Below are positions 11,287 through 16,352 of a DNA stretch of 57,856 nucleotides, piece after piece. The stretch is from Salisapilia sapeloensis CBS 127946 (taxonomy: Eukaryota; Protista; Oomycota). The translations under genes and the position numbers were made by a program. Where the stretch lies: positions 1 through 57,856 of the forward strand of contig JAADVB010000109.1 of assembly GCA_023334545.1 (NCBI GenBank), in the 5' to 3' direction. Under the pieces are notes generated by a model that worked only from the letters and a program-made list of their open reading frames with translations, was not told the DNA's origin and did not search any database. The first letter of the stretch is position 1, and each line of letters begins with the position of its first letter.

Positions 11287-13242
11287 ATGGCGACCACGAA
11301 CTCAACTTCCCCCACGAACAGCCCCGCGCAGACTTCTGCCCCGGCTTCCAATGCTGCTCCCTCGGGCGGAGCTGCGCAGCAACCGTTCCACACGGCCTCG
11401 CTTTACGTTGGCGACATTCACCCGGATGTCACGGAGGTACTTGATAAGCATTTGATAACGTATGGAAAAGAAGTATACTGAATGTTTGTACGTCTCTAGG
11501 CTCTGCTATTTGAGATTTTCAACGCAGTCGGACCGGTTGCCTCGATTCGTGTGTGTCGTGATGCCGTGACCCGCCACTCGCTCGGCTACGCGTACGTGAA
11601 CTTCCACAACGTGGCTGATGCCGAGCGTGCGTTGGACACGATGAACTTTACGAGCATCAAGGGTGTCCCGTGCCGCATCATGTGGTCGCAGCGTGACCCG
11701 TCGCTCCGCAAGTCTGGTGTTGGCAACATCTTTGTCAAGAACCTCGACACGTCCATTGACAACAAGGCGCTGTACGACACGTTCTCCTTGTTTGGTAACA
11801 TTCTTAGCTGCAAGGTCGCCATTGACAACACCACGGGCAACTCCAAGGGCTACGGATACGTCCACTACGAGACGGCTGAAGCTGCCAACGAAGCTATTGC
11901 CAAGATCAATGGCATGCTCATTGCTGGCCAAAAGGTCTTTGTCGGCCACTTCCAGAAGCGTCAGGAGCGCCCGGACATCCACGACTGGACTAACTGCTAC
12001 GTGAAGAACATCCCGACGACGTGGCAGGATGAGGACTTGCGTAAGGAGTTCGAGCCGTATGGAACCATCGTCAGCGCCGCGACCATGAAGGACAAGAACG
12101 ACCCAACGCGCAACCGTGGCTTTGGCTTTGTGAACTATGAAGAGCCGGAGAGTGCCCACAAGGCCGTTGAAGCCAAGTCCGGCTCTACGGTCAAGGGTGC
12201 GGACGGCGAAGAGCTCGAGCTCTACGTCGGTAAGGCGCAGAAGCGTGCTGAGCGCGAGCGTGAGCTTCGTCAGAAGTTTGAACAGATCAAGATGGAGCGT
12301 ATTAACAAGTACCAGGGCGTCAACCTCTACATTAAGAACCTTGACGACCAGCTCAAGGACGATGAGCTTCGTGAAGCCTTCTCTGGCTACGGCAACATTA
12401 CGTCTGCTCGTATCATGCGCGACCAGAACGACAACTCGCGCGGCTTTGGCTTCGTCTGCTTCTCCACGCCGGAAGAGGCCAACAAGGCGATTGCCGAGAT
12501 GAACGGAAAGCTCATCTCTGGCAAGCCCGTATACGTCGCGCTTGCTCAGCGCAAGGAAGTGCGTCGCGCTCAGCTCGAAGCGCAGCATGCCCAGCAGCGT
12601 GCCGGTATGATGGCTGGCCGCGGTATGCCGATGGGCCAGCCGCCCATGTACGGCGCTGCCCCGATGTTCTACGCGCAGCCTAACCAAATGCCCCCGCAGG
12701 CGCGTCAAGGCTTCGTGTACCCGCAGCAGATGATGCCGCGTGGTATGCCGCGTGGCCCTGTGCCGTACGGTGGCCGCGGTCCTGGTCCGGCTCCTGGCTA
12801 CGGCATGCCCGGCTACGGTATGCCGATGCAGGGCGGTCGTGGTGGACGTGGTGGACGTCGCCAGGGACCTGCTGGCCCTCAAGGCCCGAACGGCCCTGGT
12901 AACCGCCGCAACTTCAAGTACACGGCGAACGCTCGTAACCACCCGCGCGAGAACATGGGTCAAGAGGAGATGGGACAGCAAGCTCCTGCGCAGCAGCCGA
13001 GCGGCTCGGAGCCGTTGACGTCTGCGGCGCTTGCGGCTGCGTCTCCGGAGATGCAGAAGAACATGATTGGTGAACGTCTGTACCCGCTTATCCATCGCGA
13101 ACAGCCTGAGTTGGCCGGTAAGATTACTGGTATGCTCTTGGAGATGGACAACGGCGAGCTCTTGCACTTGTTGGAGAGCCCGGAGGCGCTTGACGCTAAG
13201 ATCCAGGAAGCCATCCAGGTGCTCGAAGCGCACCAGGGTTAA
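11287..13242 (+). CDS. PABP: Cytoplasmic poly(A)-binding protein (4 RRMs + MLLE); intron 11437-11499
   Basis: ASLYVGDIHPDVTE|ALLFEIF, SLGYAYVNF, SKGYGYVHY, RGFGFVNY, SRGFGFVCF, and C-terminal KNMIGERLYPLI..AGKITGMLLEMDN. Confidence 0.98.
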
Positions 13243-13486
13243 CTGGAGAAGCTTGTGCCCAGTCTTTCCGTAAAGGGAGGATGAGAGAGAATCGAAGGGC
13301 GGGACGTGCTTTCTGATGGAGTAGTGTAGTGGTAGCTAGACTGCGCGTAAGAGAGCAAACGATGGTCGGACGTGCCTTTCGGAAATCGTAGTGTTTATAG
13401 GTTGGGTCTAGGATGAATATAGATCGGATGGCAGATACAATCGTACTTTAGTGAATTTATATAGGTAGCAAGACACACGAGTATAA

Positions 13487-14407
13487 ATGGCGATGAGAGC
13501 TTGGCGAGTGGTGAAGCAGGTTGCTGCGAGACGGTCTGCTGTCGACAGTGTTGGCAAGTCCAATGTGATGCTTCAGGCCGCGAGTATGCAGGCTCGAGAG
13601 ATGGGGATCTTTTCAAAGGTCCGTGATACGGTGCAGCAAAAGATGGACGATCGGAATGTCGCCAAGCAAGGTGTGTCCTGCTGATTAGCATGTATGTGTG
13701 CAATTGGAGTAAAATGATGTGATTGCAGGAGAGGCGTATAAAGAGCAGATGCAAAAGCTAGCAACTCTTGATAAGTTCGACTTGGTTGACTTCCATAAAC
13801 AGCTTCAGGTAGATATATTCGTACCATTTATCTTGTGCATGCTGCTGACGAATGCATGCGCTTTAGAAACAAGCTGATGATGCTGGTGTCAATGGCTTCC
13901 GATCGATGCTACCTGGCTACTCCTCTATGGTATAGCTCATCACAGTCAAATGTAGGAAGTAGTCGATCTTAGTATATTTCTTGTAGACCGAAGTACAGCA
14001 GATGAAGAATTTCTTGGCCATTCTCGACGCCATGGATGTACGTCTGCACTACTTGTCTCTTGTATCTAAACTCCAAATCTTATATACGAAACAGGAAGAA
14101 GTGAAGAAGAATCCCAAGCTCGTGGATGGCAAATTCAAGCGTAAATTCATGCAAAAGCATGACTTTGTACGTTGTCATCTTCAACTTTTTACCTTTTCTA
14201 CTACTAATCTTCCTATTTTAGAAACCGGAAGACTTGTCTGCTATGATGAAAAACTTTGATCAGCTTCAGGCGATGCAAATGTGGCTGCAGAAACGCGTGG
14301 AGCGAGGTCTGCACGTCCCAGAGACGCTCGACGAGACGACGCGACTTATGCGTGCGGATCCGACAGGTTTCCCGACACGCAAGTTTCGTCCCAAGGTCCG
14401 TCGCTAG
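13487..14407 (+). CDS. Predicted mitochondrial protein with a stand-alone SRP54/Ffh M-domain-like region (about 213 aa, 6 exons)
   Basis: Five GT-AG introns of 55-58 nt (13671-13728, 13809-13866, 13930-13986, 14038-14094, 14167-14221) give one open frame. It contains KFDLVDFHKQLQ, RSMLPG and AILDAMDEEVKKNPKLVDGKFKRK..EDLSAMMKNFDQLQAM. Confidence 0.8.
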
Positions 14408-14493
14408 ACATTCTAGACAGAGTAACAAGACATCGAATACAGAGCAAGCATGCGCGAATGAAAAGAAGAAGCGTAGATCTATTTCCTTGTCAT

Positions 14494-16352
14494 CTACTGC
14501 TTGGCAGTTGGGAACGATCCCAAGTGTTTCACCGTTCCAACGTCCTTCTCCAGTTCGTTCATAGCGCATTGGACAGGTGTATCATCGACATGCCCATCGA
14601 TTTCAACGACGAAGTCGTACGAGCGACGTTTTTCACGATAAATGGACTCTAGACGAGATAGATTGACGCCATGTTTCTTCCAAATCTCCAAAGCGTTCAA
14701 GAGCGAACCGACTTGATGCGAAATCTCCATGCTCAGACAAGTCTTGTCTTGTCCGGTGGATGCAGGATAGTTCTTGGACACGATGCCAAAGCGGATGAAG
14801 CTAGAGGTGTCGAGGACATCTCGCCACCGACTGCTTTCACTTTCATCGACGTTGAGTTTATAGACAGACGCAGCCGCTGAGGTGGTTACTGCGACACTGT
14901 TAGGATGATAGGAGGCTTGTTGGGCTGCTTCTAAAACACCAGGAGCAGGAACGATACGTGCCGTTGGCCACGTGCGTTCGATGACAGTCTGCAACGATGC
15001 GTTCAGGTCTTCTGGCGCAAAGACCTGAGCTACATCCGACTGACGGCAGCTCTGGGCGTTCTGACTGGCACACGCAAAGGTCTTGTAGAGGAAGAGCTCA
15101 GCAGAGACTTTGAGAGAATGGTGGATGAGCTGCAGCTGCGTCTCTTTCACCATACCAGACTCGGAGTCTTCGAGAGGAACGACGCCATAGGCTGTTTGGC
15201 CGGCAGTCACTTGGGTGAAGACTTTTGAGATGGATCCAGCGACGGAGAGATGCTCCTGATCTAGTGTCTCGTTGCCAAAGTGGTTCATGGCAGCAAGGTA
15301 GTCGAACGAGCCTTGTCCATTGGCAATGGAGATGGCTGGATGCGAGAGACGCTGGAGAAGGTATGCTACTTGCACGTCTTTCGTGAGTGGCATGACAAAG
15401 TCCCTGTACAAGTCCGAGATGAGCTGCGGGTCGACCTTGTGGTTCTTCTCCGACGCTGAGACGCCAACGTCTTGACCATACGTCGACGCTTTTAGCTTCA
15501 CGCGTTCCAATACTTTCTAAAGGTGCTGTGAGTAGATGAAGAGATGGAGGTATGTATAAAAGAGTAAACCTCTTCGACTGCTGGTTTCGTAAGCTCGTTC
15601 ATAAGTCCTTCTGCATCGTTGTTTCGAATCAATTCAGTGTATTTTGGCGTCTCGGCTTGGAACTTAGCTTCAGCAATGAACTTGCCAAAGTGAATGCGCT
15701 TGCTGAGTGCCTGGAGCACTGCCATATCAGCAGTAGCAGACGATCCTCTCTATCATGGATATTGAGTACAATGCAGCTACTAGAGTAGAACTATGGTATG
15801 TACAGAAGTGACGTCACTCGTGTCAACAGTAATGTCTGGTAGGATCTTGTTCAAGTACACCTTCATAATGGTGTCATTGATGTTAATCTTGTTCGGTTTG
15901 AGCACCTGTGGGTAGCTCGAGTCTGGTAGGATGGGGCTTGGAAGAGCGTGTGGGTAGAATGCATTCTCGTCAGGAGAAGTGTATCGACGAGCAAGAGCAT
16001 GAAGCTTCTCCGTTTCGCTAAACATAAAGTCCTACGTGATGAATTGAGTGGTGGTACGATGGCTTGAGGATCATAAAACTCTACGAGGAAGCTTCCGTCA
16101 AAGGCACCGAATTTGCCTTTCAAACCTTCATACGCAACGCTGTTGCTGTCACTAGAGTGCAAATACACTTCTGGATTGCGTACGAATTGAGCACGTTCGA
16201 TCAAGGCGAAGATAATCGTCTCCTCTTGGCTACAAGATGGTCATTTATGTACATGAGCATAATCGTATATTATATCAATATCATGCAAATACACACCGAA
16301 TGAGGATATTACGGAAATCATCCAACTTTACAGACTGCACTGGAGTCTCCAT
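14494..16352 (-). CDS. Eukaryotic-type chorismate mutase fused to prephenate dehydratase-like + ACT domains (multi-exon)
   Basis: LDDFRNILIRQEETIIFALIERAQF, ETEKLHALARRYTSPDE, LQALSKRIHFGKFIAEAKF, VMPLTKDVQVAYLL; then PDT-like YGVVPLEDSESG and ACT GSLLNAL..NLSRLES. Confidence 0.9.

Follow-up and report, generated by a model that had tools for sequence, protein, structure and literature searches.

The locus at positions 13487-14407 (+) of the window, by which we mean the whole 57,856-nt stretch of Salisapilia sapeloensis CBS 127946 DNA analysed here, raises the question of whether a gene that is broken up in the list of open reading frames encodes a stand-alone, mitochondrially targeted relative of the Ffh/SRP54 M domain, and whether such a protein would be a novel 'RNA-free mitochondrial SRP relic', as the original prediction proposed, or a member of a family that has already been described.

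Gene structure and transcript

The splice sites of the gene were set by manual reading of positions 13200-14700, and RNA contigs later agreed with them. Positions 13487-14407 (+) splice into one open frame of 636 nt, as had been predicted, with the length of the product corrected from ~213 residues to a computed 211. An in-frame TAA lies immediately 5' of the ATG at 13487, and reading of the sequence found no upstream ATG within the transcript, whose 5' UTR covers at minimum 13442-13486 (+), counted from the start of record 1 of RNA contig X1. The five introns (13671-13728, 13809-13866, 13930-13986, 14038-14094 and 14167-14221, all on the + strand) are 58, 58, 57, 57 and 55 nt long, respectively, within the range of 55-58 nt originally given; all run from GT to AG, the first is in phase 1 and the other four in phase 0, and they are AT-richer than the exons, with a GC content of 37% versus 51%.

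Exon 1 (13487-13670, +) encodes residues 1-61 and the first base of codon 62, comprising a presequence-like N-terminus (residues 1-39) followed by the start of a long N-terminal helix. Exon 2 (13729-13808, +; residues 62-88) carries KFDLVDF, which corresponds to GFDLNDF in the first M-domain helix of Ffh, and exon 3 (13867-13929, +; residues 89-109) covers the finger-loop region with the family motif G-W-x-S-M-x-P-G, in which the Trp is replaced by F99. The helix encoded by exon 4 (13987-14037, +; residues 110-126) aligns to the Ffh segment ending in MEAIINSMT, while exon 5 (14095-14166, +; residues 127-150) holds what is left, in degenerate form, of the SRP-RNA-binding helix-turn-helix: GKFKRKFMQKHDF versus GSRKRRIAAGCGM in Ffh. 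Exon 6 (14222-14407, +; residues 151-211 and the stop codon) encodes the last M-domain helix (EDLSAMMKNFDQLQAM), a C-terminal extension specific to the MAP67/mL105 family discussed below (WLQKRVERGLHVPETLDETT...DPTGFP) and a basic tail. The 3' UTR extends approximately over 14408-14479 (+), with RNA contigs ending at 14456 and 14479.

Four RNA-type runs from two organisms (X1-X3 from organism A and X5 from organism B) were compared over 13300-14600. In each of the four, one contig skips exactly these five intervals, so that every junction of the model is present in RNA contigs from both organisms. The X1-X3 contigs match the window without a mismatch, and in X5 ~4% of aligned positions differ, indicating that X5 derives from a diverged relative. 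A single RNA contig spans 13442-14456, and the transcript therefore reaches at least from 13442 to 14456 or 14479. The six-exon gene is real, expressed and spliced as modelled. Its full-length product was not found in a collection of 5.8 billion proteins. Upstream of the gene, RNA word depth is very high (up to ~7900 in X2) at 13300-13387, just 3' of the PABP stop codon at 13242, which is consistent with an abundant PABP 3' UTR.

An Ffh-type M domain behind a presequence-like N-terminus

The spliced window protein was compared directly with other proteins by pairwise alignment, while Pfam, PDB-profile and structure comparisons were made with its homologues or with alignments that contain its exon pieces. 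BLASTP and phmmer both align residues 66-166 of the window protein to residues 313-424 of E. coli Ffh at 27% identity (41.6 bits in pairwise BLASTP), reproducing the motif alignments first drawn by eye. The Smith-Waterman score against Ffh is 123, compared with 38.7 ± 6.0 for 2000 composition-preserving shuffles, none of which reached 123 (z = 14). At the family level, we used an alignment of 15 full-length homologues and the six window exon translations (A1). The Pfam family SRP_SPB (PF02978) scores above its cut-off in all 15 homologues and is the sole Pfam family found in them; in P0031, the orthologue from P. kernoviae, it reaches 48.8 bits versus a cut-off of 27. Searching the single exon pieces of the window against Pfam returned no SRP_SPB match and one sub-threshold chance match, because the pieces are too short. 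Using hhalign, A1 matched E. coli Ffh (translated from NC_000913) with a probability of 97.4% over Ffh residues 322-427. The AlphaFold model of P0031 (pLDDT 76.4), which is 52.6% identical to the window protein and aligns to it without gaps, was searched with Foldseek, and all of the top 37 matches were Ffh/SRP54 or mitoribosome chains, the latter from Toxoplasma, Tetrahymena, Chlamydomonas and Polytomella. The profile and fold comparisons thus bear out the original M-domain assignment, with the mitoribosomal matches corresponding to mL105.

Several features of the protein are those of bacterial Ffh and mitochondrial Ffh (mtFfh), including the M-domain helices, a finger loop ending in LPG, collinearity without gaps over the last 49 M-domain residues, and a high methionine content (8.7% in the M-domain core, versus 13.3% in the E. 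coli Ffh M domain and 2.5% in the long open reading frames of the window). In contrast to these proteins, the window protein lacks both the N and the G (GTPase) domain: as predicted, the match is confined to Ffh residues 313-432, and the sequence upstream of it in the 211-residue product holds only the putative presequence and one helix. It also lacks the SRKRRIAxGxG motif, which the Ffh alignment places opposite KFKRKFMQKHD, the same replacement noted originally, with only K-R kept. Its finger loop is shorter, an N-terminal helix and a C-terminal extension are added, and its architecture would imply neither an FtsY nor an SRP RNA partner. By these comparisons, the window protein is a stand-alone Ffh/SRP54 M domain.

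The N-terminus had been described as Arg/Ala/Ser-rich and nearly acid-free. A count over residues 1-38 agrees, giving five Arg, two Lys, eight Ala and four Ser with only one Asp and one Glu, for a net charge of +5, and residues 1-13 are amphipathic. In the family alignment, the N-terminus is variable up to a conserved R-x-[MF], after which comes [GS]-[VI]-F-S, and processing near residue 39 would fit the position of this Arg, two to three residues before the conserved G/S-V/I-F-S. The N-terminus thus looks like a mitochondrial presequence, from which we infer that the protein may be imported into mitochondria.

Membership of the MAP67/mL105 family

A stand-alone, mitochondrially targeted homologue of the Ffh M domain is the definition of the MAP67 family given by Pyrih et al. 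2021 (PMC8321541), who found MAP67 in most lineages of eukaryotes outside Metazoa, Fungi, Discoba and Metamonada, reported its presence in mitochondrial proteomes, and identified mL105 as its orthologue. Tobiasson and Amunts 2020 (PMC7326499) placed mL105 at the tunnel exit of the Tetrahymena mitoribosome, from where its C-terminal helix enters the tunnel. In Polytomella, Toxoplasma and Perkinsus, later structures and complexome data (including PMC9576764) find mL105 in the large subunit, touching insertase density. As Pyrih et al. describe the family as too diverged for a meaningful tree (PMC8321541), we ranked PDB scores in place of a phylogeny with Ffh, cpSRP54 and SRP54. The best match of the A1 profile, which includes the window exons, was 6z1p_AT of the Tetrahymena mitoribosome (E = 1.4e-16), followed by E. 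coli Ffh (4e-14), archaeal SRP54 (~4e-11) and mammalian SRP54 (only ~1e-4). [quoted passage not shown] This match spans profile positions 22-189, extending past the M domain on both sides and including parts not shared with Ffh, and the P0031 model superimposes on the same chain with a target-normalised TM-score of 0.67. Within the C-terminal extension, WLQKRVERGLHVPETLDE... aligns with FLRRTKEKGQPLPETSEE of mL105, in columns that are among the most conserved in the family.

The window protein shares with MAP67/mL105 an Ffh-type M domain that stands without NG, a degenerate SRP-RNA motif and a conserved C-terminal extension, and its putative presequence would fit the family as well; by both sequence and structure, mL105 chains are the best matches. 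Nothing categorical separates it from the family, the differences being F99, D149 and seven more departures in residues 136-168. The SEC-C-like C-terminal extensions of Chloroplastida and Centrohelida MAP67 (PMC8321541) are absent from it. A P. infestans protein, XP_002907919.1, is already listed in Table S7 of PMC8321541 with the TargetP assignment "M" at reliability class 1, and its printed sequence contains the same blocks as the window protein. The gene is therefore not a new discovery, as its family has been published as MAP67/mL105 and is annotated in many oomycetes. Judged by homology, it is the oomycete orthologue of this known family; of the proposed mitochondrial SRP relic, the M-domain-only relationship to Ffh stands and the novelty does not.

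Searching a representative library with exon 6 (14222-14404, +) returned 28 matches, several of which were full-length proteins of 160-250 residues; two others, P0019, which contains WD40 repeats, and P0026, were rejected as spurious. A search of a large collection with P0006 from Globisporangium splendens found ~30 oomycete proteins, nearly all with PF02978, from Phytophthora, Peronospora, Hyaloperonospora, Bremia, Pythium, Globisporangium, Aphanomyces, Saprolegnia and Thraustotheca. UniRef names these relatives "SRP54 subunit M-domain domain-containing protein". The spliced window protein is 50-55% identical to the Phytophthora and Pythium proteins over ~180-217 aligned residues, with E-values down to 1.9e-77; its alignment to P0031 runs over 196 residues without a gap, and the six exon pieces tile the alignment of 15 homologues collinearly.

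The order PABP, MAP67, chorismate mutase/prephenate dehydratase (CM/PDT) is common to the window and P. cactorum, and all five intron positions are identical in the P. cactorum gene, which has a sixth near the C-terminus. This annotated sixth 'intron' (L002 7042-7114), after which six codons are left, lacks an initial GT in the exon mapping, and the C-terminal end of the public P. cactorum model may be imprecise. In the window, the CM/PDT gene (14494-16352, -) is convergent with MAP67 and the 3' ends of the two almost touch; in P. cactorum, the CM_2+PDT gene (L002 7351-9313, +) lies on the same strand as MAP67, in the opposite orientation to that in the window, and an extra gene of 825 residues sits between PABP and MAP67. 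Together, the reversed orientation and the extra gene suggest that the lineages differ by an inversion of local extent and by one insertion or deletion. RNA contig X2 (2405 nt) runs through both MAP67 and CM/PDT, suggesting that their 3' UTRs may overlap. The public name 'chorismate mutase' is attached to some MAP67 orthologues, among them P0034 from P. cinnamomi and P0006, and one 648-residue protein, P0004, is a fused gene model containing SRP_SPB, CM_2 and PDT; the name probably spread from models in which the two adjacent genes were run together.

Predicted role, divergence and alternative readings

The Ffh M domain binds bacterial ribosomes at a site at the polypeptide exit tunnel. We consider the gene highly likely to specify the MAP67/mL105 orthologue of oomycetes, a mitochondrial protein that would handle nascent chains at the tunnel exit without SRP RNA, with import, ribosome binding and chain handling all proposed by analogy. 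The nuclear-encoded product would consist of a diverged Ffh-type M domain flanked by a presequence and long helix on one side and a basic, family-specific C-terminal extension on the other. If the arrangement follows that in the solved mitoribosomes of ciliates, apicomplexans and green algae, the protein in its mature form would belong to the mitochondrial large subunit and lie at the exit tunnel, where its C-terminal part may reach into the tunnel and its methionine-rich groove may meet hydrophobic nascent chains. It could thereby help to couple these chains to the inner-membrane insertase (Oxa1), independently of SRP RNA, of any NG GTPase and of an FtsY receptor. Binding to the oomycete mitoribosome is predicted here by homology with Tetrahymena, Toxoplasma, Polytomella and Perkinsus. 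To metazoan mL45, a Tim44-like protein, Tobiasson et al. 2022 (PMC9576764) assign the corresponding place at the tunnel exit and a comparable membrane-mediating role. They describe mL45 as specific to metazoa and as recruited after mL105 had been lost, so that its role would be analogous rather than inherited.

The window copy keeps 47 of the 56 strongly conserved family columns. One of its nine departures is F99 in the finger loop, in place of a Trp that is otherwise invariant in the family, and the remaining eight lie in residues 136-168, in the remnant of the SRP-RNA-binding helix-turn-helix, including D149 in place of an invariant Gly. This is the second Gly of the SRP-RNA-binding motif, which is Gly in all 15 other family members and Asp in the window protein. 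The diverged relative represented by X5 shows almost no change in the exon that encodes this remnant. As nine of 56 conserved columns are changed, the window protein could make somewhat different contacts than its relatives do. A reading in which mL105/MAP67 has drifted further in this oomycete lineage than in any sampled relative, reflecting either a rebuilt surface for docking on the mitoribosome or a function that is partly independent of ribosomes, strikes us as rather doubtful.

The unusual divergence of the helix-turn-helix remnant in this genome would also fit a MAP67-family protein that works in oomycetes as a matrix chaperone for hydrophobic segments, soluble or membrane-associated, and not as a stable mitoribosomal subunit, and Pyrih et al. 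could only speculate on the function of MAP67 (PMC8321541). We regard this as distinctly unlikely, as wherever the family has been seen, by structure or complexome profiling in Tetrahymena, Toxoplasma, Polytomella/Chlamydomonas and Perkinsus, it has always belonged to the large subunit and lain at the tunnel exit; in addition, the C-terminal extension by which mL105 is anchored in the tunnel counts among the most strongly conserved portions of the window protein.

The M-domain fold and motifs are common to SRP54 and Ffh, as would be expected if the locus derived from cytosolic SRP54, as a fragment or a pseudogene copy, or were an independently truncated mitochondrial Ffh with no relation to MAP67. 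Such an origin is very improbable, given an intact frame that is spliced and expressed, synteny and intron positions that are conserved across oomycetes, and an mL105 match that extends outside the M domain; eukaryotic SRP54 is, moreover, the weakest class among the PDB matches (~1e-4, versus 1.4e-16 for mL105 and 4e-14 for bacterial Ffh). The original prediction had allowed for the outcome that the locus is a piece of cytosolic SRP54; the much higher scores of bacterial Ffh, and a gene that is conserved as well as expressed and spliced, tell strongly against it. Helical sequences rich in Met and Lys might resemble one another by chance, and the 27% pairwise identity to Ffh and the failure of single exon pieces to match Pfam could be read in that way; this is hardly credible against a Smith-Waterman score 14 standard deviations above 2000 shuffles, an hhalign probability of 97.4%, SRP_SPB above the gathering score in 15 of 15 homologues and a fold search whose top 37 matches are only SRP54/Ffh and mL105.

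Taken together, these comparisons favour the MAP67/mL105 assignment, and on the alignments the locus is a routine orthologue whose sole local peculiarity is that the former SRP-RNA-binding motif and the otherwise invariant Trp have diverged further. In practical terms it contributes a validated gene model to this genome, and the presence of a MAP67/mL105 orthologue here makes no long-standing question newly testable. MAP67/mL105 has been described as an ancestral eukaryotic mitoribosomal protein that was lost in opisthokonts, and it has already been recognised in oomycetes; these non-opisthokont pathogens would have, at the tunnel exit of their mitoribosomes, a protein that is absent from animals.
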